Positions 47,442-64,000 of a stretch of 64,000 bases of DNA are shown piece after piece. The DNA is taken from positions 124,001-188,000 of the IMG/VR virus record IMGVR_UViG_3300037264_008423. One strand, 5' to 3'. Every line of letters starts with the position of its first letter. Within the stretch, counting starts at the first letter, position 1. The notes under the pieces were generated by a model, which saw only the letters and a list, made by a program, of their open reading frames with translations, made no database searches and was not told the origin of the DNA. Both the position numbers and the translations under genes were made by a program.

Positions 47442-47560
47442 TCACACCCGAAGACAACCCGGTGAACGAGAAAATGCTGCGCCGCCATGCGCGGCAAGTG
47501 CAGACCAAACTCAAAAGGATGTTTGGCACAGATGAAAGCGGCGAACCGCGCGCCGCTTAA
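47438..47560 (+). CDS. 40-aa hypothetical peptide
   Basis: MITPEDNPVNEKMLRRHARQVQTKLKRMFGTDESGEPRAA; ATGA-coupled; not in the track. Confidence 0.45.
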   Translation: MITPEDNPVNEKMLRRHARQVQTKLKRMFGTDESGEPRAA

Positions 47561-50004
47561 TCCTCGATCCGGTCCAAGGGGGGGCGCTGGCGACGGCGGC
47601 GCAGGCGGTGTCCTGGCCGCTCGCCGCCTTGGTCTTCCTCTGGCCGCCATTCCAGCTTCTCCAGAATGCTCATGGTCATGCTGCGCGGTTCCACGTTGCC
47701 CCGGAAGTGCTGATAGGCGGTCCCATGCCGATTCAGAAATACGAAGTAACGGATGATGTTTTGGGCATACTCGTCGTCCGTGGCGCACAGGCCAATGGCC
47801 ACGTCCACAATTCCCGCCTTCTCAAACGATCCCTGGAAGCTCTTCATGCTGGGCACCGCCAGGTCCACCGTTTCCTTGTTGCACCGGTCGGGCAGGATGA
47901 CCGGGCAGCCAAATTCGGAACCCAGGGCGCGCGCTTCCAGATAAATCTCACCCTGGGCGCGCCACTCGCTGGTCCGCTTGGGATCGGAACTGGGCTTTAC
48001 GGTTTCGGCGAAGTCGATGATGATGGCCTTGGGTTTGACGCCGAAGCGCGCGCTGGCAGTCAGCGCATGGGAGCGGATGTCGCCGCTAATCGTGGCCGCG
48101 CGCGAGGGAAAGCCTTTGATCAGCAGGGTGGAATTAAGCCTTTCGTTGGCCATTTGCAAGGCTTTTTCCGTAAACGTTTTCTTGTTCTGGTAGATCATGT
48201 CAAACGGCAGATCGGTCAGATTGCAGAGACAGCGCACGGCGGCAAGCTCCTGGCTGATCTCGCAGGGATAGTAGAACACGGGGGAGCCGGTGTTCTCGAT
48301 CATGTTCATGGCCAGGTTGATGCAGAAGGCGGTGTTATGGGTGACCGTGAAGTCGCTGTGCAGGTAGCGGCGATTTCCGTCGATTTCTATGCCAAACCAC
48401 TCTTGGTTGCCTACTGGCGCTACTTTTATCGTTGTTCTGTCCGAGGCTTTTTTAGAATCGGTTCCGTGCTTCCTGGCAACCTTGGTTGGAATTTCGCTGA
48501 TTCGGCCCTGAACATAAGTTCTATAGGCGATTGAGAATATCTTTTTTCCTTTTACGATGCATTGGCTGCGAAACGGGCGTATGAAGCTTTTAAAGCCTAA
48601 ACTTCTAGCAAGCCAGCAAGTATCTTCGCATAGCAGTCGGTTTGTGTCTGTAAAAATGAATCCACGGTTATTGGCGTGGCTACCGTCACTGTCAATTAGT
48701 CCGGCCAACAGTCGCAGGCGTGTGGCTTGGCTATTTATTTTGTAAACAAATGGGATATGCTTGTTGCGCAGGAGATTTAAAGCGCGCAGTCCGTTTATGA
48801 TCGGATTTTGGCCTTTGCCCTGTCCAACGAGAGACACCTGCGTGCAGCGCGTTTTCTTTCTATAGGTGGTTACGCGTAACCCTGCCTTAGTGGCAAAGTC
48901 GTGTAGAAAAGGCGTAATTTCCGGGTCATCGTCCCCTACGCTTATAGAAGCTTCATGCGAACTGCCATCCCCAAGCCAAAGACCAAGAAAATAAGGATCT
49001 AACGGCACGCTCACTGCGGGGAAGTCAACTCTGACTTTGTAACCTTTCCAATCTCGGTGGAAGTTTGCTGATTTTTTCGCATAGTCTTCAGCCGTAATCT
49101 CCAGAATTTCACCCAAGTGATACCTGTCTGTAAACCTTCCAACCGGCACCGTGCCCGGTGGTCTTTTCACACAGAGAATGTGGTCGTGGGTGACCGTATA
49201 GCTGTCGCCGTTTGCTTGGGTGACCCGATACATAGGGGCGCAGCCCCGGCCACAACTAAGCACGTTGCGGGGTGTTCCGTCGTCTCCCATGATTTTATCT
49301 CCGGGAGCAAGCTGGCAAATTTGTTTAATGGTGCCGTCAAACATTAGTATCTGCGTGTCAGGGCTTTCACATTTATATCTTTTAGGCGGAGCTAAAATTG
49401 CAATGAGCCAGCCGGGACCCCAGCCAAAGGGCCAGATGCGGTCCAGATCTCCAAAGCCAGTCTGGATGCCGTAGTCGCGCTTGGTCACGGTGTCCAGGAC
49501 CAGTTGGATGTCGCTCTCCCCGGATTTGATGCGGTAGCCAATGTCTTTGAGGTTCTGCCCCACTTTGAGCGCGTCCTCGAACAGTTTGGTAAACCCACCA
49601 GGGGGAGCCTCACCGGTTTTGTGGTAATTGATGGCTTTGTCGCAGGCGATGTAGAGGGCGCGCTCCCGCGCGAACTCCACGGTCTTTTCCACCGCGTAAT
49701 CCACGTCCGACGTGTCCAGCGTGGTGATCTTGCGCACAAAGGCCATGATGTTGCCTTCCTCCTTGGCGTCGGAGGACCGCAAGATGGCGTCGTAAACAAT
49801 TTGGCTGAGGGCTTCAGGCTGAGGGAAACGTCCGTTTTTATTCCAGTAGGCGAAGAGCGCGCGCGCTGTGGCCACACGCGGCACGCTGGTAAAATAGGCG
49901 GAGTTCAACGTTCCCGCGTTGTGCATGAACCTTTCCGGGTGCGCGATAATCGACGCCAGGAGCAGGTCTTGGAACGAACCGTCGTATGAGTATTTTTCAA
50001 ACAT
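47557..50004 (-). CDS. Replicative DnaB/gp41-like helicase, intein-containing
   Basis: TGFGDLD, APPKRYK/T P-loop, IKGFP, IIIDFAE, SFEKAGIVD, NRHG. Confidence 0.85.
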   Translation of the reverse strand: MFEKYSYDGSFQDLLLASIIAHPERFMHNAGTLNSAYFTSVPRVATARALFAYWNKNGRFPQPEALSQIVYDAILRSSDAKEEGNIMAFVRKITTLDTSDVDYAVEKTVEFARERALYIACDKAINYHKTGEAPPGGFTKLFEDALKVGQNLKDIGYRIKSGESDIQLVLDTVTKRDYGIQTGFGDLDRIWPFGWGPGWLIAILAPPKRYKCESPDTQILMFDGTIKQICQLAPGDKIMGDDGTPRNVLSCGRGCAPMYRVTQANGDSYTVTHDHILCVKRPPGTVPVGRFTDRYHLGEILEITAEDYAKKSANFHRDWKGYKVRVDFPAVSVPLDPYFLGLWLGDGSSHEASISVGDDDPEITPFLHDFATKAGLRVTTYRKKTRCTQVSLVGQGKGQNPIINGLRALNLLRNKHIPFVYKINSQATRLRLLAGLIDSDGSHANNRGFIFTDTNRLLCEDTCWLARSLGFKSFIRPFRSQCIVKGKKIFSIAYRTYVQGRISEIPTKVARKHGTDSKKASDRTTIKVAPVGNQEWFGIEIDGNRRYLHSDFTVTHNTAFCINLAMNMIENTGSPVFYYPCEISQELAAVRCLCNLTDLPFDMIYQNKKTFTEKALQMANERLNSTLLIKGFPSRAATISGDIRSHALTASARFGVKPKAIIIDFAETVKPSSDPKRTSEWRAQGEIYLEARALGSEFGCPVILPDRCNKETVDLAVPSMKSFQGSFEKAGIVDVAIGLCATDDEYAQNIIRYFVFLNRHGTAYQHFRGNVEPRSMTMSILEKLEWRPEEDQGGERPGHRLRRRRQRPPLDRIED
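48334..49371 (-). mobile_element. Intein (346 aa) with LAGLIDADG homing endonuclease
   Basis: Begins CESPDTQILMFDG, block B TVTHDH, LGLWLGDG and LLAGLIDSDG, ends VTHN followed by Thr; AT-richer than the extein. Confidence 0.95.
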
Positions 50005-55344: not shown

Positions 55345-56585
55345 TGCGCGCTTGGGAAATCATCGAGGCCATCGACGACCCCAGCGGCCTGATCCACCCG
55401 GAAAAGCATCAGGCCATCGGCGGTCGCACCCACCCGCTGGGCAGGCACCCCGCTTACCCGGAGCACACGCCTGGACCCGAGGAGCGCACGACCAACTACG
55501 AGGAAGTGCTGGCCAGCCGTCAATGGCAGAAGATTTTGCAAAAGGGCCAGCGTTACCTGGGGGTTCCCTTGACGCGGCAAGCGTTGCCGGTTATCCAGCG
55601 CAAGCTGATCCAGGCCATGCAGTTGATTGCCCAGGCGGAGGCCGAGCATAAGGAGGAGCTGGAAGCCCTGGCCATCGAGCTGGTGTTCGAGCTGCCGGAG
55701 TTTAAAAGCGCCCGGCAAGCGTATGAGTCCAACCAGATTGTCATTGACGCTCAACTGACCGATGAACCCAGTCTGGAGGGGACCCTGACGAGCGACGAGC
55801 CGGAGGCTCAGGCTCCCCTGCACCAAGAGCGAACGCCTGCTGAAAAAGAGTGGATCAACAAGATGATCCAGCGGCGGCACTTTACCAACGCCATGATCCA
55901 AGGCTCCGCTGTCTCCAACAACTACCTGTTCGAGTTGGCTGGGCAAGCCCTGGACCGCATTCATCCTCAACTGCGCCAAGCCTATGGCACGCTCATGGTC
56001 GCCACGGAGACCGGCTACTGGATGTTCCCGCAAAGCGCCGTCATTCAAGGGGCGCGCGCTCAAACTCAGGTAGGTTCCACCAAAGTGGATTTTACGGACG
56101 AGCAGGAAATGGACCAGGACGAGCCGGAGGCTACCCCCGCCCAGCGCCGACCTAAAGTAAGCGCCCAGGCGCTTCATTTTCCCGTTTTGATTCAGGAAAT
56201 CATCAAAGGCTTGACGGAATTAGCCTCGCTGCCCAGCCTGCCGCGTGACCCGGATGAACGCCAGGAAGTCATGAACAAAGCCGACCTGGTGGACATGGAG
56301 GCGTGGCACATGATCCTGGGTCCACAGCTTTGGGACCAGTTCGTGGCCGCTACGGACGCCGAAAACGAGCGCGAGCTGACTTTTCACCTTTATCGCTATA
56401 TCCAACAGATGGATGTGGACCAGTTCAACTCTTTCATGCGCGAAATCTACGCCAAGACACCCAGGGGCATCCAATTGTTGCGCCAACTGGCGCAGCGGGT
56501 AAAGGCGGATCTACAGGCGTACGAGGAGGGCCAGGCAGGCATGGGTGAGTCCGTGCGCTGGCTGATTCGCGCGCTCATTGATTAA
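55344..56585 (+). CDS. Hypothetical large-phage protein, probably virion-associated
   Basis: 413 aa; E..HKEELE.LAIELV, RRHFTNAMIQG, FPVLIQEIIKG, GPQLW. Confidence 0.8.
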   Translation: MRAWEIIEAIDDPSGLIHPEKHQAIGGRTHPLGRHPAYPEHTPGPEERTTNYEEVLASRQWQKILQKGQRYLGVPLTRQALPVIQRKLIQAMQLIAQAEAEHKEELEALAIELVFELPEFKSARQAYESNQIVIDAQLTDEPSLEGTLTSDEPEAQAPLHQERTPAEKEWINKMIQRRHFTNAMIQGSAVSNNYLFELAGQALDRIHPQLRQAYGTLMVATETGYWMFPQSAVIQGARAQTQVGSTKVDFTDEQEMDQDEPEATPAQRRPKVSAQALHFPVLIQEIIKGLTELASLPSLPRDPDERQEVMNKADLVDMEAWHMILGPQLWDQFVAATDAENERELTFHLYRYIQQMDVDQFNSFMREIYAKTPRGIQLLRQLAQRVKADLQAYEEGQAGMGESVRWLIRALID

Positions 56586-56980
56586 ACTTTGACCTCCACT
56601 ACCGCGCCACAGTGTTCGCATTTGTAGCGCATTTCCGTTTTACCGTTCGCCGATTGCACGCGGGTCGCCGCGCTCTTAATGCTTTTCCGGCACGCGCCGC
56701 AAAGCAGGACAAAATCCGCAGGAATTTCCGGCTGCGGCTTGGGGGGTGGGGCCGGGCTGGGTTCCGGTTCTAGCGGGGGTAGGACTTGAGCGGCGGGAGC
56801 ATTAATCGAAATCGAGGAAGTGGTGACAGGCTCAGCCGGGTTCATCCAGACATGTGTCTGCGTCGCGGACCGGCTGCCCCGCACGAAGTCGTAAGCCAAT
56901 TTTAGCAGGACCACGGTCAAGGTCAATAGCCAGGCTGCGCCGCAGATCCAAAAAGTTTGAGCGCAAATATTTTTAAGCAT
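56582..56980 (-). CDS. Membrane-anchored zinc-ribbon protein
   Basis: N-terminal TM, Pro-rich linker, CGAC...CEHC. Confidence 0.7.
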   Translation of the reverse strand: MLKNICAQTFWICGAAWLLTLTVVLLKLAYDFVRGSRSATQTHVWMNPAEPVTTSSISINAPAAQVLPPLEPEPSPAPPPKPQPEIPADFVLLCGACRKSIKSAATRVQSANGKTEMRYKCEHCGAVVEVKV

Positions 56981-57021
56981 AATTATTTTTGTTTACAAAT
57001 TCTACCCCATGCATCATCTTA

Positions 57022-59109
57022 ATGGAAAGAACCGAATATATGACCATAACTGACGCCCAACGGATCGTGGCTCTTAGAACTGAACTCACTGACCACGCCT
57101 ATCGCTATTACATCGCCAACTCGCCTTTTATTTCCGATGACGAGTATGACCTGAAGTTTAAACAGCTCGTGGAAATGGAGAATCAGCACCCCGAAATGTT
57201 CGACCCCAATTCGCCCACTCAGCGCGTTGGTTCGCCAATTCCCGGAGAGCAGCGCAAAATGCATCACCGGGTGCGTATGCTGTCGCTGGATAACACGAAC
57301 AGTCTTGACGAAGCGATGGATTTTCTGTCGGGTCAAGAGGGGAGAGAAGTGACTTTGGAGATGAAAATTGACGGCCTGAGCCTGCACCTGGACTACGAAA
57401 AAGGCAGGCTGGTCCGCGCCATCACGCGCGGCGATGGATCGGATGGCCAGGACGTGACGGAAAACGCGCGCACCATCCATACCCTCCCCCTGGTGCTGCG
57501 CCGACCCGTGGACATTTCAGTGCGCGGCGAGGTTTATTGGAGTCTGACCCAGTTTGAAAAGTATAACACGACGGTCGCCGAGGGAGACCGGTTTGCCAAT
57601 CCGCGCAATGGGGCTTCCGGCAGTCTTCAGCTCAAGGATTCCAGGGAAGTGGCGCGCCGCCACTTGAGTTTTGTGGCCTACAGCGTCCCCACGGATCTTC
57701 CCCCAGCCGTTACCACCCAGGAGGCCCTGCTGGAATATCTGGAAAGCCTGGGATTTATCAGCACCATGACGCTGCCGGTGCGCGCGGACATGGCCGGGCT
57801 GCCCTACTTGACCAGCGTGATTCAGCGGGAGGAGTTAGAGCGCGCGATTGGGTTTCTGAAAGAGTATCGGGCAAGCTTGGACCTGGAGACCGATGGCCTG
57901 GTGATTAAGCTTTCCTCCCTGGCGCTTCAGCGCGATTTAGGCGAGGGCACGCGCGCGCCTAAATGGGCGGCGGCCTACAAATTTCCCCCGGAGAGCAAAG
58001 AGGCGCTGCTCCTGTCCATCGCTCCGCAACTAGGTCGAACGGGACAAATTACGCCCGTAGCTAAAATCGAACCTGTGACGCTGGATGGCGTGGTGGTTCA
58101 GAGCGTGTCCCTGTGCAATCAGGACGAACTGGACCGGCTGGGCATTGATATCGGCGACTATGTTCAGGTCCAGCGCAGCGGCAAAGTGATTCCCAAGATC
58201 GTGGGCCTGGCGCGGCCCTCTCCTTCCAAGTCCAGCCCCCATCAGAGTTTTCAACTTCCCAAAACCTGTCCGTGTTGCGCCACAACTTTGATCCGCCCCC
58301 AGGGCATGGTCCACCTATACTGCCCCAACCCGGACTGCCCGGATCAGGTTTACGCTCGCCTGGTTTACGCCCTGGGCAAAGAGGCGCTGGACATTGACGG
58401 TTGCGGGGACATTACCGTGCGCTTGCTGGTGGAAAAAGCAGGTGTGAAGAAACTGTCCGATCTGTTCGCTTTAACCGAGTTTGGATTCATTAAGGGCGCG
58501 GCCCAGCGCAAGCTGAAGGAGGGTATCGAGGCCGCCAAGAAAGCTCCGCTTTGGCGCAAGTTGGCGGCGCTCAGCATCGAAGAAGTGGGCAGGGTCAAGT
58601 GCCAGGACTTGGCCACTAAATTCAGCCAACCGGTGCCTGCGGATGAATTACAAAAAGAGGAGACGGCGGAAAAGCCGGAAGACCAGCTCAACCCCATCCT
58701 GCGCATGATGAACTACTCCGGGCAGGTCGAACGCCTGATCGGCGCATCAGCTAAAGACCAGCTTATCAACTATCTGTATGACCATATCGACGAGCTGGAG
58801 CGCCTGGCCGATCACGGTTTTATTTTCAGCGCGGACGCCCGGTCTGCCGGTCCGCTCAGTGGCAAGACTTTTTGCATCACGGGCACGCTCATGAGCGGCA
58901 AGCGGGATGAAGTTAGCGCCTTGATCGAGAAGCTAGGCGGTGTGGTCAAGGGCGAGGTCACCAAGAACGTCGGGTTTTTAATTCAGGGGATGGGCGGGGG
59001 CAATAAAAAGGCGGCAGGCGCGCTCAAACACGGCACCCGGACGATCACTGAGGAGGAACTTTATCAGATGATGGGTGTCCCTATGCCGATCATGGGAAAA
59101 ATTGAGTAA
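57022..59109 (+). CDS. ligA: NAD-dependent DNA ligase
   Basis: YRYY, MLSLDN, EMKIDG, TRGDG, RGE, NPRN, DGLVIK, GRTG.ITPVA, Zn finger, C-terminal BRCT. Confidence 0.97.
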   Translation: MERTEYMTITDAQRIVALRTELTDHAYRYYIANSPFISDDEYDLKFKQLVEMENQHPEMFDPNSPTQRVGSPIPGEQRKMHHRVRMLSLDNTNSLDEAMDFLSGQEGREVTLEMKIDGLSLHLDYEKGRLVRAITRGDGSDGQDVTENARTIHTLPLVLRRPVDISVRGEVYWSLTQFEKYNTTVAEGDRFANPRNGASGSLQLKDSREVARRHLSFVAYSVPTDLPPAVTTQEALLEYLESLGFISTMTLPVRADMAGLPYLTSVIQREELERAIGFLKEYRASLDLETDGLVIKLSSLALQRDLGEGTRAPKWAAAYKFPPESKEALLLSIAPQLGRTGQITPVAKIEPVTLDGVVVQSVSLCNQDELDRLGIDIGDYVQVQRSGKVIPKIVGLARPSPSKSSPHQSFQLPKTCPCCATTLIRPQGMVHLYCPNPDCPDQVYARLVYALGKEALDIDGCGDITVRLLVEKAGVKKLSDLFALTEFGFIKGAAQRKLKEGIEAAKKAPLWRKLAALSIEEVGRVKCQDLATKFSQPVPADELQKEETAEKPEDQLNPILRMMNYSGQVERLIGASAKDQLINYLYDHIDELERLADHGFIFSADARSAGPLSGKTFCITGTLMSGKRDEVSALIEKLGGVVKGEVTKNVGFLIQGMGGGNKKAAGALKHGTRTITEEELYQMMGVPMPIMGKIE

Positions 59110-59169
59110 GCTGTAAAGGGTTGGCTGGCATGACTTTGCGTTGTCCGTAAAAATATTTTCATTTTTAAT

Positions 59170-59198
59170 TTGCATTGTTTACGAAAATAATTTAGTTT
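59170..59198 (+). promoter_or_regulatory. Sigma70-like promoter of the tRNA-array leader
   Basis: TTGCAT-N17-TAGTTT with AT-rich upstream sequence; 10 nt before ATG 59209. Confidence 0.55.
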
Positions 59199-59208
59199 CT
59201 GCTTGTCA

Positions 59209-59397
59209 ATGAGACGTAATGTCTTTACGGTGAAAGTGCAAATCAGAATGAACTTAGAGCGTCACATGTCAGTCAATTTAAAACCCGCCAATTCGGGACG
59301 GCATTATGCTGCCCTGATTCAAGGGTGGGATAGTGCCGCCGTGTTGTGCTTTAGCGCCCGTAGCACACGCGAACCAGGTCAGGAGGTAGCAGGATAG
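59209..59397 (+). CDS. Putative attenuator leader peptide (62 aa; alternative start 59248)
   Basis: Last codons GAG GTA GCA GGA TAG coincide with the antiterminator strand; contains all 20 amino acids. Confidence 0.55.
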   Translation: MRRNVFTVKVQIRMNLERHMSVNLKPANSGRHYAALIQGWDSAAVLCFSARSTREPGQEVAG

Positions 59398-59460
59398 GGT
59401 CGCACTCCAAAGAATTTTCATCCTGCTACCTCGAAAGAAGTCAGCAGGATTTTTCATTTT
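59383..59460 (+). promoter_or_regulatory. Antiterminator/terminator switch
   Basis: 59383-59395 pairs perfectly (13 bp) with 59420-59432; alternatively 59420-59450 forms a GAAA-capped hairpin followed by TTTTCATTTT. Confidence 0.75.
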
Positions 59461-59570
59461 ATGCCCCAGTGGGGACGAGAGCCAGGCCGTTAATCTGGTA
59501 AACGCCACAGTTAAAGACCCGTGGGTTCAACTCAGACTTGAGATCGTAGGTGTGTGTTCTTTGTTGAAAG

Positions 59571-59621
59571 GCCCCACGGCCTGTAGCCGCAAGCCGGTGA
59601 CCGCCGTGGGGCTTTTATTTT
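59571..59621 (+). terminator. Second terminator-like hairpin
   Basis: GCCCCACGGC-N22-GCCGTGGGGC followed by TTTTATTTT. Confidence 0.55.
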
Positions 59622-59696
59622 AAACCGTATTTAGAGAAAGAAAATTATGCCGACGCGCCAAGCCGAATCACAGAAGATCGCAGCCGCCGCGCGCAC

Positions 59697-59770
59697 GCGG
59701 GTATGGTCTAACAGCAGAACGAGGCGGTGCCAGCGCTTAGGTGGGGGTGCGATTCCCCCTACCCGCTCCA
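59697..59770 (+). tRNA. tRNA-Gly(GCC)
   Basis: GCGGGTA/TACCCGC acceptor, U73, CCA; anticodon loop GTGCCAG; T-loop TGCGATT. Confidence 0.9.
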
Positions 59771-59779
59771 AATTTAGAA

Positions 59780-59850
59780 TGCTACCGGTCTCAACGGTGA
59801 CGTGATTCAGACCACTGAGTCATCCGAGTTCTATCCTCGGCGGCTGCACC
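59780..59850 (+). pseudogene. tRNA-like element or degenerate tRNA
   Basis: T-arm CCGAG-TTCTATC-CTCGG, stem TGATTCAG/CTGAGTCA, imperfect acceptor stem. Confidence 0.35.
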
Positions 59851-59852
59851 GT

Positions 59853-59928
59853 GGGGGCGCATGTTCCGTAGCGGCGAGATTGCCTTGCAAGCAAACTGGG
59901 TCGGGTGCGACTCCCGTCACCTCCACCA
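59853..59928 (+). tRNA. tRNA-Ala(TGC)
   Basis: G3-U70, A73, CCA; loop CTTGCAA; T-loop TGCGACT; atypical D arm. Confidence 0.8.
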
Positions 59929-59934
59929 AATCTT

Positions 59935-59963
59935 TTGACAGATTTTTTTGCGCGCGGTAAGGT
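59935..59963 (+). promoter_or_regulatory. Sigma70-like promoter (leaderless)
   Basis: TTGACA-N17-TAAGGT, 5 nt before ATG 59969. Confidence 0.75.
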
Positions 59964-59968
59964 CAAGT

Positions 59969-60157
59969 ATGAAACGTAAACACTTTCTATATGGCCTGCT
60001 CGCAGGCGCGGCGTCCACTTTAATGCTGGTCTTGTTCCTAGGCGCGGCAGATCCCACTTGGCTGGACATCGCAAGCAGCCTGAAGCGGATCGCCCATTCC
60101 CTGGAGATGATCTCCGGCCAGCGGCCCGGTTGGAAAATTCCATACGCGGGTAAATGA
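59969..60157 (+). CDS. Small exported/membrane protein inside the tRNA array
   Basis: MKRKHFLYGLLAGAASTLMLVLFLGAA signal-like N-terminus. Confidence 0.7.
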   Translation: MKRKHFLYGLLAGAASTLMLVLFLGAADPTWLDIASSLKRIAHSLEMISGQRPGWKIPYAGK

Positions 60158-60162
60158 CCTTC

Positions 60163-60236
60163 GGGGCCATAGCTCAATAGCAGAGCGGGTCGTTCGCAAC
60201 GACTAGATCGGGGTGCGACTCCCCGTGGTTCCACCA
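60163..60236 (+). tRNA. tRNA-Ala(CGC)
   Basis: GGGGCCA/TGGTTCC, G3-U70, loop TTCGCAA, CCA. Confidence 0.9.
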
Positions 60237-60241
60237 GATTT

Positions 60242-60316
60242 CGGCTGCGTAGCTCAATAGCAGAGCGTGCGCGTCACATGCACAAGGAACCCGTGCGATT
60301 CGGGCGTGGCCGACCA
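60242..60316 (+). tRNA. tRNA-Val(CAC), apparent 8/4 fold
   Basis: CGGCTGCG/CGTGGCCG acceptor, CCCG/CGGG T-stem, loop GTCACAT, A73, CCA. Confidence 0.75.
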
Positions 60317-60332
60317 TTTTGTTCTAAAGCTT

Positions 60333-60776
60333 GTGATCAATAGTAAACAAATCAAAGCTGAATTAGCCGTCATAAAGGTGCAGGAAGCGGCACTTAAAAT
60401 GGGCCGGATATGCAGCAAACCTGTCATTGAAGGGACGCGCTACGATTTGATAGTTGATGACGGTAAGCGTCTTATGCGCGTTCAAGTCAAATACTGTGGT
60501 GGTTATTACGATGGCGTTGTTGCGGTTAAACTTAAAAGTTATGGTAGGCAGGGGGCAGACCGTAGCTATTGCGCCAGTGAAATCGACGCCGTTATAGCCT
60601 ATTCTGATGTGAATGACCGGCTTTATTGTCTGCCGATTACTATGCTAGCGGACAAAACAACCATCCGCTTGCGCCATGCTCGTCCTAGAAACAATCAAAA
60701 GCAGCGGATTTGGCAGGCAGAAGACTTTATATGGGGCTGTAGCTCAAATAGGCAGAGCAGCACGATGGCATCGTGA
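60333..60776 (+). CDS. PD-(D/E)XK homing-type endonuclease (group I intron-associated family)
   Basis: KAELAV, RYDLIVD, RVQVK, Y..SEID; GTG start 7 nt after GTTCT; 3' end overlaps tRNA-Ala(GGC). Confidence 0.85.
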   Translation: MINSKQIKAELAVIKVQEAALKMGRICSKPVIEGTRYDLIVDDGKRLMRVQVKYCGGYYDGVVAVKLKSYGRQGADRSYCASEIDAVIAYSDVNDRLYCLPITMLADKTTIRLRHARPRNNQKQRIWQAEDFIWGCSSNRQSSTMAS

Positions 60777-60809
60777 AGGTTGAGGGTGCGATTCCCTTCG
60801 GTTCCACCA
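60733..60809 (+). tRNA. tRNA-Ala(GGC)
   Basis: GGGGCTG/CGGTTCC, loop ATGGCAT, T-loop TGCGATT, ACCA. Confidence 0.85.
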
Positions 60810-60815
60810 ATTTTT

Positions 60816-61031
60816 GCCAATAAGCTGGGCGGTTGATCGAGACTTCCGTCTGGCCGAACGCGGTTACGATCAGCCGGGGGAACCGGTAAAACCTACGGCT
60901 GTTGGGAGCGAGGCTTGCCGAGCAGCAGGCCGCTTTGGCAGTATTTCACGGCACCCAACGTGGGACGGCGGCAGGCCGGTCGTGCGGTCTGTAAACGCGA
61001 CTCCGCCCGTCAGCGTAAAACAGGTGCCGTG
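60816..61031 (+). ncRNA. Structured ncRNA candidate (two multi-stem domains)
   Basis: CGGTTGATCG/CGATCAGCCG, GGCTTGC/GCAGGCC, CACGGCACC/GGTGCCGTG, CAGGCCG/CGGTCTG; lies between tRNAs. Confidence 0.55.
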
Positions 61032-61034
61032 TTT

Positions 61035-61110
61035 ACGGCAGTAGCTCAATTAGCAGAGCGGCGGTCTCCAAAACCGTTGGTTGGGGGTGCGAGTCCTCCC
61101 TGCCGTGCCA
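61035..61110 (+). tRNA. tRNA-Trp(CCA)
   Basis: ACGGCAG/CTGCCGT, loop CTCCAAA, G73, CCA. Confidence 0.92.
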
Positions 61111-61113
61111 TTT

Positions 61114-61353
61114 TTAGCGCGCGGGTTTTACTTTGCGCCGGGCGCGCGCCTTGCTTTTAGCAATGGGCGCTTGTTGGACATAACTCGGACACTTCGGGTT
61201 TTCGCAGTGACCGCCTTTTTTCACCAACCAGCCGCAAGCGCATTGGCTGAAGCAGTCACATTTTAAGAATCCCTGGGTGCCGCACGTGGGACAGACCACC
61301 GTGGCATCGATCAGGCGCTCAATGGCGCTCAAAGGTTTAGTTTGCATCGGCAT
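61114..61353 (-). CDS. Small Cys-rich protein antisense to the tRNA array
   Basis: CPTC..CDC..CACG..CENPKC. Confidence 0.6.
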   Translation of the reverse strand: MPMQTKPLSAIERLIDATVVCPTCGTQGFLKCDCFSQCACGWLVKKGGHCENPKCPSYVQQAPIAKSKARARRKVKPAR

Positions 61354-61378
61354 ACACTAAGTCATAGAATCAATTTTA

Positions 61379-61463
61379 CCCACAGTCCAGAAAGAGTGGA
61401 GGAAGGTCCCTACGCGCCACAGCGGAAGTAACGGGGCCAGGACCACAGTGGTTTGGACTGGGG
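61379..61463 (+). ncRNA. Rod-like hairpin RNA candidate
   Basis: CAGTCCAGA/TTTGGACTG, GTGG/CCAC, GGTCCC/GGGGCC nested stems with purine-rich internal loops. Confidence 0.45.
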
Positions 61464-61468
61464 TGAAC

Positions 61469-61556
61469 GGGCGTGTGACCGGAGCAGCAATCGGCACGGG
61501 CTGTAAACCCGTCGGCCTAAAAACCTACGCAGGTGCGAGTCCTGCCACGCCCCCCA
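61469..61556 (+). tRNA. tRNA-Tyr(GTA)
   Basis: GGGCGTG/CACGCCC, loop CTGTAAA, long variable arm, unusual C73, CCA. Confidence 0.88.
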
Positions 61557-61561
61557 TTTTA

Positions 61562-61650
61562 AGCGCCGTAGCTCAGAGGCAGAGCAAACCCAAAGCCTGT
61601 AACCAGGTGAGCGGTGGGGATGAGAGGTTCGAGTCCAATCCGGCGCACCA
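61562..61650 (+). ncRNA. tRNA-like RNA with expanded anticodon arm
   Basis: GCGCCG/CGGCGC-ACCA, canonical D arm and GGTTCGAGTCC, but a 24-nt insert in place of the anticodon loop. Confidence 0.6.
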
Positions 61651-61679
61651 TTCTTCCGTCTGGCGGTGTAATTAAAGGC

Positions 61680-62102
61680 ATGAACAGCAAGATTATCGGG
61701 GATATTTCCGAAGCATCCGTAATTGCGGCTCTTTTAAAATCGGGTTTGAACGTGTTAATGCCTTTCGGTGACAGGAACAGGTATGATATCGTGATTGAAC
61801 ATGACGGAAAATTTGAACGTGTGCAGATAAAAACAGGTAGGCAGCGCGGGAGAGTTATAGTCTATAATACACAGAGTTCAACTCGCGTTAACGGCAAACG
61901 GTGTGAATTAGGCTACCAAGGCCAAGTTGAAACTTTTGCGGTTTATCACCGTGAGCTGGATCGGGTCTATATGGTTCCTGTCGGTAAAGCAGCTACCGGT
62001 AAAGGGAGTTTGCGCTTGGGGCCTAAAGGCGGTTCTGGTGTAGGACCAAGATGCCTTTACGCTGATGACTATATTTTAAGGAGCGTTAGCTCAGTCCAGT
62101 AG
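61680..62102 (+). CDS. PD-(D/E)XK homing-type endonuclease (group I intron-associated family)
   Basis: GDISEA, PFGDRNRYDIVIE, RVQIKTG; GTAATTA 5 nt upstream; 3' end overlaps tRNA-Asp. Confidence 0.88.
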   Translation: MNSKIIGDISEASVIAALLKSGLNVLMPFGDRNRYDIVIEHDGKFERVQIKTGRQRGRVIVYNTQSSTRVNGKRCELGYQGQVETFAVYHRELDRVYMVPVGKAATGKGSLRLGPKGGSGVGPRCLYADDYILRSVSSVQ

Positions 62103-62156
62103 AGCAATCGACTGTCTATCGAAAGGTCAGGGGAGCAAAGCCCCTACGCTCCGCCA
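62080..62156 (+). tRNA. tRNA-Asp(GTC)
   Basis: GGAGCGT/ACGCTCC, loop CTGTCTA, G73, CCA; aberrant T-loop AGCAAAG. Confidence 0.85.
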
Positions 62157-62159
62157 TTT

Positions 62160-62268
62160 TTGCTTCCACAGCGCCGCCCCTGAAAGCGGCGACTGTTACG
62201 ATCCAGACAGGACAGATCGAGCCGGTTAAATAGAGTCCTTCTTTAATTGGCGGACAGCATGGAAGCAA
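62160..62268 (+). ncRNA. Four-way-junction RNA candidate with loop-loop pairing
   Basis: TTGCTTCCA/TGGAAGCAA closes three hairpins; loops contain complementary AGGAC/GTCCT. Confidence 0.6.
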
Positions 62269-62284
62269 TTTGTTCTTACGCGGT

Positions 62285-62899
62285 ATGACGAAACAGGAAC
62301 AGCTACAGGCCCTTTCTTACCGCGTGATCCGCTGCCGCCAGTGTCCGCACCTGGTCCTATCCAGGACGCAGACCGTGTTTGGCACCGGTAATCCCGACGC
62401 GGAGTTCATGTTCGTAGGAGAGGCACCCGGCAAAGATGAAGACCGGATCGGCGAGCCGTTTGTTGGCCGCGCCGGGAAATTTTTAACCAGCTTGATCCGC
62501 CTGATGGGATTTACCCGCGATCAGGTTTACATCGCCAACGTGCTCAAGTGCCGCCCGGACGCGGAATCAGGCAATCGCAAGCCGGAAGCGGAGGAGATGG
62601 AAAACTGCCTGCCGTTTTTAAAGGAGCAGATCCAGATCATCCAGCCCAAAGTTTTAATCGCCCTGGGCGCGACCGCCCTGGAGGGCTTGAAGGGCAAAAT
62701 CGCGCCCATCAGCCAAGTGCGCGGCCACATCTATGACTTTCACGGCACGCCCCTGGTGCCCACGTTTCACCCGGCCTACGTGCTGCGCAATTCGGCCACG
62801 GAAGTCCGCAGCCTGGTCTGGCGGGATTGCTGCCGCGCAATGGACTTGGCCGGTTATGACACCCTGGACCGGCGCGAATGGGTGCCGGACATGGCTTAG
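62285..62899 (+). CDS. Uracil-DNA glycosylase family 4
   Basis: CRQC.L, VGEAPG..ED..GEPFVGRAG, ANVLKCRP, PTFHPAY; GTTCT 8 nt upstream. Confidence 0.95.
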   Translation: MTKQEQLQALSYRVIRCRQCPHLVLSRTQTVFGTGNPDAEFMFVGEAPGKDEDRIGEPFVGRAGKFLTSLIRLMGFTRDQVYIANVLKCRPDAESGNRKPEAEEMENCLPFLKEQIQIIQPKVLIALGATALEGLKGKIAPISQVRGHIYDFHGTPLVPTFHPAYVLRNSATEVRSLVWRDCCRAMDLAGYDTLDRREWVPDMA

Positions 62900-64000
62900 G
62901 ATTGAGCGATGAAATTAAGGCTGGCGTAAATGGTTTCCCCAGCGCCAGTGAGCCTTTGCGCGCAGAGCCATAGCTCGTCGCGCCTGCCGCCGATGGACAT
63001 GCCCAGCCCAAAAAAGCCCGTCATTCCAATGTTGGCCAGGCTGGTGCTGGCAATCGCGTAAGCGGCCATAACCTCCGTGCCGCTGACACACGTGTTCGTG
63101 TTGGTCGTCGCGGCGGCATACTCCACGGCGCTGTTCGGGATGGGCACCCAGGAAATCGCGCCTGCGCCGTTGATGGTTGGGTTGACCACCAGGGAGCACC
63201 GCAGCGCGGCGTTGCTGGTGCAGGCGGCGGATAAGCCCGTGGGGCTGACCGTGGCGTGGGTGCCGCTCGTCGTGAGGCGGAGGCCCAGGACCGCGTATAA
63301 ATTCGCGTCGTTGCCGGTGGCAAAAGGATTAGTTCCCCGGCTCACCGCGCGCGGGTAGCCCGTATTGATAATGCCGCCCTCGCTAATGACCGTGGAGCAG
63401 ATGCAGCTCAGCGTGGCCGCCGCCCCCGCGCCGCTGCTGGCGAGTTCGTAGCGCAGCGGCAAATTCGGTGAGGAGGTATAAACGTCGGTGGACTGGTTGG
63501 AGTGGTGCGCGTCATGGACCCGGACCATGTGATGGCCAAGGATAAACCCGAAATGGACCGTGCCCACCCCTAGCCACTCAAAGTCGATAAACATGATTTG
63601 CGCTTTGGACAGATCCAGCGTAATCCCGGAGGGTCCGGTCCCGTCCAGCCGGTCCATGTTCCAATCCGCCTGAGCAAACGTTTCCGCCGCCAAGCCGTTT
63701 TTCCGCAGCACAAAGGCTGGTCCGCTGGCCGTCTGCTCCAATAAAAATCCGTTGAAATCGTCGAAGTAGCCGACACGCCGGGTAATGCCGGTGGAGGCGG
63801 CTCCCATCACGAAGGTCATCATGACCAACTGCGATTTTCCGGGTTGATAATTGAATCGGCGATAGGTCTGCCGGACGCGCGTGCCAGCAGTGCTGGCCGA
63901 GACCCCCAGCAGGACTTTGGCATTGGTCCGATCATGGGTGCTGGAGGTTCCCGTGCCGCTGGTCGGCTGGTCGTCCCACAGGTGGGGCGCGGCGTCCATG
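62896..64000 (-). CDS. Virion structural protein (5' end probably outside the window)
   Basis: RQT.RRFNYQPGKSQL, Q.DWN.DRLDGTGPSG, IDFEWLGVG.V.FG, PNLPLRYE pattern of large-phage structural proteins. Confidence 0.8.
   Translation of the reverse strand, partial: MDAAPHLWDDQPTSGTGTSSTHDRTNAKVLLGVSASTAGTRVRQTYRRFNYQPGKSQLVMMTFVMGAASTGITRRVGYFDDFNGFLLEQTASGPAFVLRKNGLAAETFAQADWNMDRLDGTGPSGITLDLSKAQIMFIDFEWLGVGTVHFGFILGHHMVRVHDAHHSNQSTDVYTSSPNLPLRYELASSGAGAAATLSCICSTVISEGGIINTGYPRAVSRGTNPFATGNDANLYAVLGLRLTTSGTHATVSPTGLSAACTSNAALRCSLVVNPTINGAGAISWVPIPNSAVEYAAATTNTNTCVSGTEVMAAYAIASTSLANIGMTGFFGLGMSIGGRRDELWLCAQRLTGAGETIYASLNFIAQS

Follow-up and report, generated by a model that had tools for sequence, protein, structure and literature searches.

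A group of tRNA genes at positions 59697-62156 of a 64-kb stretch of viral DNA carries a G in place of the U at T-loop position 55, and we read this as one half of a remodelled tRNA elbow in which the G18-Psi55 contact is replaced by A18-G55. The stretch, hereafter the window, comprises bases 124,001-188,000 of a 238,436-bp IMG/VR virus record (IMGVR_UViG_3300037264_008423) that came from a sediment metagenome and is linear, with 57% G+C and a CheckV completeness of 96%. Judged by its marker proteins (baseplate J, a DnaB helicase with an intein, a family-A DNA polymerase, an NAD-dependent ligase and a virion structural protein), the record is an uncultured tailed jumbo phage. We think it fairly probable that the phage tRNAs are working genes in which A18-G55 has taken the place of G18-Psi55, and that this exchange is under selection by an agent acting in trans. 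Our searches of the full-text literature found no published description of the A18/G55 elbow, and other literature may hold one. Its occurrence in phage tRNAs and Verrucomicrobial arrays appears undescribed, while L-arrays, phage tRNA clusters and anticodon-loop escape variants are already known.

Within the window, ARAGORN called five tRNAs and the Rfam model RF00005 called seven, with scores of 38-61 bits where the gathering score is 29. The Rfam alignments place a G against the model's U55 in all seven. The same G is read in a degenerate tRNA-Ala(UGC)-like gene that was called by neither program, has no convincing D-stem and contains mismatches at 6-67 and 49-65. In the D-loops of 7 nt the numbering is forced (A14, 15, 16, 18, 19, 20, A21), and a loop such as AATAGCA must be read as A18 G19. 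Two observations of a preliminary description of this DNA, G55 in all readable tRNAs and AG instead of GG in the D-loops, are thus borne out by the gene calls and the numbering. In tRNA-Asp, the T-loop AGCAAAG is read as A54 G55 C56 A57 A58, and in tRNA-Val(CAC) the register of the T-stem and acceptor is irregular by one base. The tRNA-Ala(GGC), which had been set apart as keeping GG, is no clear exception, because its D-loop AAATAGGCA allows the registers A18 G19 G20 and G18 G19 equally. A tRNA-like RNA at the end of the group does keep GG and TTCGAGT, as had been stated, but it is not comparable with the others. Its 4-nt 'anticodon' loop and its interrupted, irregular T-stem indicate that it is not a decoding tRNA, and a search of Rfam at E<=1 found no family for it. 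The unusual bases at positions 32 and 38, once offered as a sign of anticodon-nuclease evasion, make a weak argument. A32-U38 is usual in bacterial tRNA-Ala(GGC) and Pro(GGG), which leaves Gly (G32/G38), Val (G32/U38) and Asp (U37) as the ones that look odd.

The feature had been described for 59697-62156, but the tRNA genes run on to position 212,177 of the genome. The whole tRNA region spans genome positions 183,697-212,177 (28.5 kb) and reaches 24 kb past the end of the window, which holds only its start, the first tenth. In the rest of the region, RF00005 gave 24 further matches. By combining ARAGORN, Rfam and a scan for acceptor stem, T-arm and CCA, we counted about 36 phage tRNAs. ARAGORN detected 23 of them and missed about a third, which is a practical warning that standard tRNA finders can overlook genes of this set.

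G55 is present in 31 of the approximately 36 phage tRNAs, together with A (rarely C or U) at position 18. The five tRNAs with U55 are Pro(UGG), Asn, Phe, Lys and an initiator-like Met. A D-loop GG occurs in all five of these and in one of the 31 G55 tRNAs (Fisher p=1.6e-5). The G55 T-loops are diverse and include TGCGA, TGCAA, TGAGA, TGGGA/TGGAA, TGTGA, AGCGTTA, AGTGTTA, AGCAAAG and GGCAGCA. Most of the phage tRNAs keep G19-C56; tRNA-Arg (five genes), Ile(GAU) and Ser(CGA) have U19-A56, C19-G56 or A19-U56 instead. In nearly all of them the acceptor and T-stems are paired 7/7 and 5/5 and the gene includes the CCA end. The identity elements read by the cognate synthetases are retained: Ala has G3.U70, His has C73 and an encoded G-1, Cys has U73, and the initiator-like Met has C1xA72. 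U33 and a purine at 37 are mostly kept as well, the exceptions being Asp (U37) and Pro(UGG) (C33). Taken together the genes apparently cover all 20 amino acids, although some of them are structurally irregular. Among the phage proteins, we found no TruB, CCA-adding enzyme, RtcB or EF-Tu-type GTPase, and no aminoacyl-tRNA synthetase of PF00133 or PF00587. Host enzymes must therefore accept the phage tRNAs.

Positions 18 and 55 also change together in other genomes. An A18 D-arm word, TAGCTCAATAGCAGAGC, was found in 53 IMG/VR contigs and in at least 120 genome contigs, which among the matches listed were mostly Verrucomicrobiota metagenome-assembled genomes with some Patescibacteria. ARAGORN, run on all related loci that were fetched, gave a sample of 859 unique well-paired tRNAs. 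In this sample, GG was found in the D-loops of 29/458 G55 tRNAs and 370/392 U55 tRNAs (p~1e-172), and AG was found in 389 of the 422 tRNAs with G55 and C56. A compensatory covariation of 18 with 55, proposed in the preliminary description, is supported by these counts and by the literature on UGNRA loops with an intercalating adenosine. The neighbouring pair covaries too, AC going with G56 (p=0.002) and AT with A56 (p=0.0007). Loops without C56 are nearly restricted to two families with a pyrimidine at position 19, tRNA-Arg and Pro(UGG). In G55-rich arrays, Met(CAT) has 16 genes with U55 and 5 with G55, and all other isoacceptor families are mainly G55 except Ser(UGA), which leans to U55 in a total of six genes. 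Many of the Met(CAT) array genes with U55 are initiator-like, with 1-72 unpaired.

As a control, we used viral IMG/VR loci ascertained through the canonical word TAGCTCAATGGCAGAGC. G55 occurred in 0/99 of the ascertained tRNAs and in 5/581 (0.9%) of their neighbours, and four of these five again had AG. Compared with these neighbours, the 86% of G55 tRNAs in the focal phage (p~8e-42) excludes chance. These figures answer how widespread A18/G55 already is, a count that the preliminary description had left to be made: it dominates in this phage and in Verrucomicrobial arrays and is rare in the control viral loci, and the cellular housekeeping sets that were examined are mostly canonical. The elbow is not a general property of phage tRNAs, because only U55/GG tRNAs occur in six cultured phages (Erwinia Kwan, Stenotrophomonas Marzo and DLP_6, Mycobacterium Astro and CloudWang3, and Pseudomonas SYP) and the control loci have so few G55 tRNAs. 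It is not a general property of L-arrays either, because the array on the Anabaena delta plasmid is canonical GG/TTC but for one tRNA. That lone exception again couples TGCAACT with AAG.

The change is not confined to tRNAs. In the transfer-messenger RNA (tmRNA) of the phage, UUAGACUCGAU stands where the consensus reads cuGGaUUCGAC, AG replaces GG in the 5' D-analogue and the T-loop is GGCAGUG. Three cellular tmRNAs (two from Verrucomicrobia and one from a Saccharibacterium) are canonical, with GG and GGGTTCAA/GGGTTCGA. The tRNA region of the phage also encodes a Ro60/Rsr orthologue and YrlA-like permuted tRNA mimics. One of these mimics combines the T-loop TGCAAAT with the D-loop AATCAGCA, and another combines TTCAAAT with AGCGGTA. 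Because tRNAs, tmRNA and a YrlA-like RNA are altered, the covariation spans three unrelated RNA scaffolds in one genome.

Cellular genomes offer two kinds of counterpart. In a Verrucomicrobial genome of 6.6 Mb (G001), the dispersed housekeeping tRNAs that we read are GG/TTC in 22 of 22 cases, and a chromosomal array on a 914-kb contig (C1:398001-418000) holds 20 tRNAs that are all G55 and adjoins an ordinary glycoside hydrolase gene. RtcB RNA ligase is encoded inside 21 of 48 G55-rich loci, nearly all of them on Verrucomicrobial genome contigs, and an HNH endonuclease inside 13 of the 48. When the open reading frames (ORFs) around G55-rich arrays were clustered, only RtcB and HNH recurred as real proteins; the other clusters were rejected as ORFs running through tRNA genes or as antisense shadows. 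In the array of G001 the RtcB reading frame is split in two ORFs. The exact A18 D-arm word occurred in only one of 301 sampled genomes of that phylum, G001 itself, and the arrays are therefore patchy. By k-mer content only, 24 RNA-labelled runs contain 11-21% of the 31-mers of the Verrucomicrobial array.

The second kind is found in a Saccharibacteria genome of 0.7 Mb (G003), in which 46 tRNA matches were found, 43 could be parsed and 41 of these were canonical. The two others are the sole tRNA-Cys and the sole tRNA-Thr(UGU) of that genome, and both are A18/G55. Since no other copies of these tRNAs exist there, the altered elbow should work in ordinary translation, and these two genes are the best available support that it serves this purpose. 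This Thr(UGU) is also present in many contigs of Patescibacteria (L089-L091, L101, L114, L115, L120, L121, L138 and L173).

How the altered elbow may be built can be suggested from published structures. In tRNA, residue 18 is inserted between 57 and 58 (the fourth and fifth residues of the T-loop) and bonds to 55, residue 19 pairs with 56, and the pair 19-56 offers a flat outer face as a stacking surface for RNase P, the L1 stalk and T-boxes (PMC4810234). T-loops outside tRNA follow the rule U/Y-G-N-R-A with an adenosine in the gap between the fourth and fifth residues, so that the UUCRA of tRNA is the odd one, and UGNRA T-loops are intrinsically stable motifs (bioRxiv 10.1101/2022.12.26.521914). 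In a yeast suppressor tRNA, SUP4oc, single mutations at 18-55, 19-56 and 54-58 were not tolerated and inactivated the tRNA (PMC4117946). In its full form the motif is a pentaloop, U/Y-G/U-N-R-A, that is closed by a reverse Hoogsteen pair of residues 1 and 5 and takes up an intercalating base. The T-loops of the phage match UGNRA at the level of sequence and have an A available at 18, from which a geometry of this kind may be predicted. The double change would thus swap a tRNA-specific contact for the generic contact of a T-loop with an adenosine. From the published T-loop rules, the L-shape and the 19-56 stacking face should be preserved. The outer pair G19-C56, whose face is offered to RNase P, the ribosome and T-boxes, is retained in most of the tRNAs, and an inverted pair, with a pyrimidine at 19 and a purine at 56, is found mainly in tRNA-Arg and Pro(UGG).

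What changes is the set of bases on display. Because they have G55 and A18, these tRNAs are no substrate for Psi55 formation by TruB or Gm18 formation by TrmH, and in the variants with A54/U58 no m5U54 is possible. The lost dependence on pseudouridylation that had been suggested earlier is in this sense trivially true, as there is no U55 to modify. T-loops with A54 and U58 (ATCGTTA, ATCGTAA and ATCGTCC) also occur in Stenotrophomonas phage DLP_6 and in Asn, Lys and Pro(CGG) of the focal phage, where U55 and GG are kept; positions 54 and 58 are thus another pair that is exchanged as a whole. Whatever reads or cuts the T-loop would meet different bases in the altered RNAs. We suggest that the agent selecting A18-G55 may be an enzyme or nuclease directed at the T-loop or elbow, and it could belong to the host, to competitors or to the phage. 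We propose such an agent because the tmRNA and a Y-like RNA share the change while the initiator-like tRNA-Met stays canonical, and we favour it also because of the association with RtcB and Ro60 and the diversity of T-loops in one genome. Evasion of a reader of the elbow or T-loop is plausible as the reason for the selection. As a precedent only, a PD-(D/E)XK toxin is known whose cut in the T-loop falls between its conserved T and Psi residues (PMC9086364).

A bolder form of this proposal is that the full tRNA complement, the tmRNA and the Y-like RNA make up an insulated phage set, hidden from an activity that acts on the elbow or T-loop and puts canonical tRNAs out of use. The candidates for this activity would be a host abortive-infection tRNase, a competitor's tRNase or a host shut-off enzyme of the phage. 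We put this form forward tentatively and think it rather unlikely. If it were true, translation during infection would shift to the phage's own tRNA pool, and the RtcB arrays of Verrucomicrobia would be a cellular reserve set of tRNAs immune to the same class of attack. Because the elbow is shared by chromosomal arrays and sole-copy cellular tRNAs, it is not by itself a phage-specific counter-defence device.

Several points weigh against selection by an agent in trans, or against our description of the elbow itself. The elbow occurs in single-copy cellular tRNAs, and no special selective agent is needed for its existence. Position 18 is assigned by register, which is ambiguous in about five phage genes (Ala GGC, Val UAC, Gln UUG, Arg CCU and the Ala-like gene), and some of the 19-56 combinations are C.A or unassignable. 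Two exact contigs of 151 nt in a sediment metatranscriptome cover 60564-60829, that is, the end of an endonuclease ORF and tRNA-Ala(GGC). They have a low depth and possibly derive from DNA carry-over, and they are all the RNA evidence for the phage, as no other exact match was found in the 5.9 kb of the phage region that were compared. In a different account, a second, workable elbow was fixed in mobile tRNA genes as a near-neutral signature of a lineage, was spread by duplication, homing endonucleases and horizontal transfer, and does nothing more than allow the tRNA to fold. The Cys and Thr genes of the Saccharibacterium agree with this, as do the filled chromosomal arrays of many Verrucomicrobia, the HNH and PD-(D/E)XK endonuclease genes among the tRNAs and the intrinsic stability of UGNRA loops. 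However, the tmRNA and the YrlA-like RNA are changed though they are not paralogues of tRNA, the initiator-like Met is selectively spared, and many variant T-loops stand side by side in one genome. The frequency of G55 in the phage is also far above the approximately 1% in control viral loci, and no close sequence identity was found between the phage tRNAs and those of the Verrucomicrobial arrays. We consider near-neutral spread possible, with a chance well short of even.

It might also be supposed that the host's own tRNAs have A18-G55 and that the phage copies the style of its host. Some cellular tRNAs do use this elbow, which leaves our preferred reading exposed on this side. The phage DNA polymerase is at most 27% identical to those of cultured phages and gives no clue to the host. 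A BLAST search of window positions 56001-64000 against plasmids and phages returned only generic tRNA-Trp matches and no relative, and a search for syntenic viral loci through the DNA ligase found none. However, the housekeeping sets of both the Verrucomicrobial and the Saccharibacteria genome are canonical, and so are the cellular tmRNAs of three genomes. No genome with a G55 majority outside an array was found among those examined. Sharing of A18/G55 by host tRNAs, named in the preliminary description as the finding that would speak against it, was thus not seen in the one comparable case, the housekeeping tRNAs of G001, and we regard mimicry of the host as improbable. It is even harder to see the genes as decaying pseudogenes or tRNA-derived repeats without function. 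Some members are indeed aberrant (the Ala(UGC)-like gene, a Ser(UGA) without CCA, a Phe with a 52-nt insertion and the Val with its shifted register), and several genes were missed by ARAGORN. Against this, the stems are almost all perfectly paired, the changes are compensatory, most genes retain U33/R37 and their identity elements, the set apparently serves all 20 amino acids, if in part by irregular genes, the Rfam scores exceed the threshold and the pattern is conserved over hundreds of loci. Decay is therefore very improbable.

Selection of A18-G55 by an agent in trans remains the reading that we prefer, and it has some wider meaning. The G18-Psi55 contact is among the most conserved in biology, and here a natural double substitution of it recurs in hundreds of tRNAs. 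The altered elbow would be a second design for the corner of tRNA and a natural experiment on the contribution of Psi55, m5U54, Gm18 and the enzymes that make them. The tRNAs are candidate scaffolds for bypassing host modification and T-loop-directed nucleases. That the tmRNA and a Y-like RNA are changed and the initiator is spared points to a reader of the elbow in the conflict between phage and host. The features discussed here are listed in Table 1.

Table 1. Features of the window and of the rest of the phage tRNA region. Positions are those of the window unless marked genome (the full record), L001 or L002; L001:8312 corresponds to genome 191312 and L002:3211 to genome 203211.
Feature	Position	Strand	Details
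DnaB-like helicase	47557-50004	-	split by intein
tRNA-Gly(GCC)	59697-59770	+	D-loop AACAGCA (A18 G19); T-loop TGCGATT (G55); CCA encoded; G32/G38
Degenerate tRNA-Ala(UGC)-like gene	59853-59928	+	by sequence reading; T-loop TGCGACT (G55); G3.U70
tRNA-Ala(CGC)	60163-60236	+	D-loop AATAGCA; T-loop TGCGACT; G3.U70; CCA encoded
tRNA-Val(CAC)	60242-60316	+	D-loop AATAGCA; T-loop TGCGATT; G32/U38
PD-(D/E)XK endonuclease-domain ORF	60267-60776	+	PF11645, E=2e-20
tRNA-Ala(GGC)	60733-60809	+	D-loop AAATAGGCA; T-loop TGCGATT; G3.U70; A32-U38
tRNA-Trp(CCA)	61035-61110	+	D-loop AATTAGCA; T-loop TGCGAGT
tRNA-Tyr(GUA)	61469-61556	+	long variable arm; D-loop GAGCAGCAA; T-loop TGCGAGT
tRNA-like RNA	61563-61650	+	D-loop AGAGGCA; T-loop TTCGAGT; ACCA end; canonical elbow
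Second PD-(D/E)XK ORF	61680-62102	+	PF11645, E=9e-30; 3' end overlaps start of tRNA-Asp
tRNA-Asp(GUC)	62080-62156	+	D-loop AGTCCAGTA (A18 G19); T-loop AGCAAAG; U37
124-nt RNA	genome 190169-190292		ACCA end
YrlA-like permuted tRNA mimic	L001:5828-5930		inside tRNA region
tRNA-Phe(GAA)	genome 191312-191450		canonical elbow; 52-nt insertion
Leu-type tRNA	genome 201799-201883
Leu-type tRNA	genome 201884-201967
tmRNA	genome 203211-203641		RF00023, 55.2 bits vs gathering 47, model positions 1-374
YrlA-like permuted tRNA mimic	L002:4588-4652		inside tRNA region
Ro60/Rsr orthologue	L002:5450-7144		TROVE and vWA; inside tRNA region
Leu-type tRNA	genome 210429-210512
YrlA-like permuted tRNA mimic	L002:11669-11780		inside tRNA region

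Two ORFs with a PD-(D/E)XK domain lie among the tRNA genes of the window. We take their family, PF11645, to be that of I-Ssp6803I, a homing endonuclease of tRNA genes, and the two are probably free-standing homing endonucleases that move tRNA genes. Because of this family, we set aside as a first reading the idea that they are T-loop tRNases. HNH endonuclease ORFs are also interspersed further along the tRNA region, and the intein of the DnaB-like helicase has Hint and LAGLIDADG homing endonuclease domains.

A few RNA genes of the region have an unusual build. In tRNA-Phe(GAA), the insertion follows the 3' half of the T-stem and precedes the 3' half of the acceptor stem, with a matching CGTCCCC-G-CCA downstream of it; it could be an intron, an insertion or the mark of a broken gene. 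The three Leu-type tRNAs are 81-82 nt long and have a connector of 7 nt between acceptor and D-stem (TGGTTAA or TGGTTTA, where 2 nt are usual) and a variable region of 7-8 nt. In the arrays of Verrucomicrobia and Anabaena, the Leu tRNAs have a length of about 75 nt and no long variable arm. The 124-nt RNA has a perfect 7-bp acceptor stem and the T-arm GGAGG-TTCGACT-CCTCC; its D and anticodon arms are not recognisable, and its fold has z=-3.6.

Among known systems, the L-arrays of Anabaena are similar in having dozens of supernumerary, CCA-encoding tRNA genes that move by horizontal transfer and have HNH-type endonuclease genes among them. They also share a link to RNA-damage and translational-stress responses and to RtcB, which here is found in the cellular G55 arrays. 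They differ in the elbow, which is canonical GG/TTC in Anabaena apart from the one tRNA, and we found no mention of a change in the elbow in the L-array paper (PMC8421152). A tRNA array unit was defined as at least 20 tRNA genes at a density of at least 2 per kb (Tran et al., PMC4758250); the phage region, with its interspersed protein genes, falls below this density at about 36 genes in 28.5 kb (1.3 per kb). The absence of G18G19 and T-Psi-C is shared with tRNAPyl (PMC1851642) and with metazoan mitochondrial tRNAs, but in those the loops are shrunken or missing and the contacts are idiosyncratic. The phage tRNAs have normal loop sizes, G19-C56, G53-C61 and usually U54-A58, and the 18-55 contact alone is exchanged.

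A further likeness is to the generic T-loop motif of FMN and cobalamin riboswitches, RNase P, the L1 stalk of rRNA and stem I of T-boxes, which obeys the same rule of U/Y-G-N-R-A with an A. The phage loops UGCGA, UGCAA, UGAGA, UGGGA and CGCGA fit this rule, with A as residue 18. The difference is that the motif here lies inside tRNA, where UUCRA and G18 are regarded as essentially invariant. In Salmonella, Ro60 (Rsr) with YrlA Y-RNA modules is reported to lie beside RtcB, in work to which the L-array paper refers (PMC8421152, its ref. 85). The phage similarly encodes Ro60 and YrlA-like mimics in its tRNA region, but one of its Y-like RNAs has the A18/G55 elbow and the phage is without RtcB. 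Phages of the T5 type are said to carry tRNAs that escape PARIS, retron Eco7 and anticodon nucleases through changes in the anticodon loop. We know of no cognate defence for the A18-G55 elbow such as these escape tRNAs have. In both cases the phage has a set of tRNAs that differ from those of the host where a protein would read them. The change described here lies instead at the corner of the D-loop and T-loop, is a compensated one at two sites and includes a tmRNA and a Y-like RNA.

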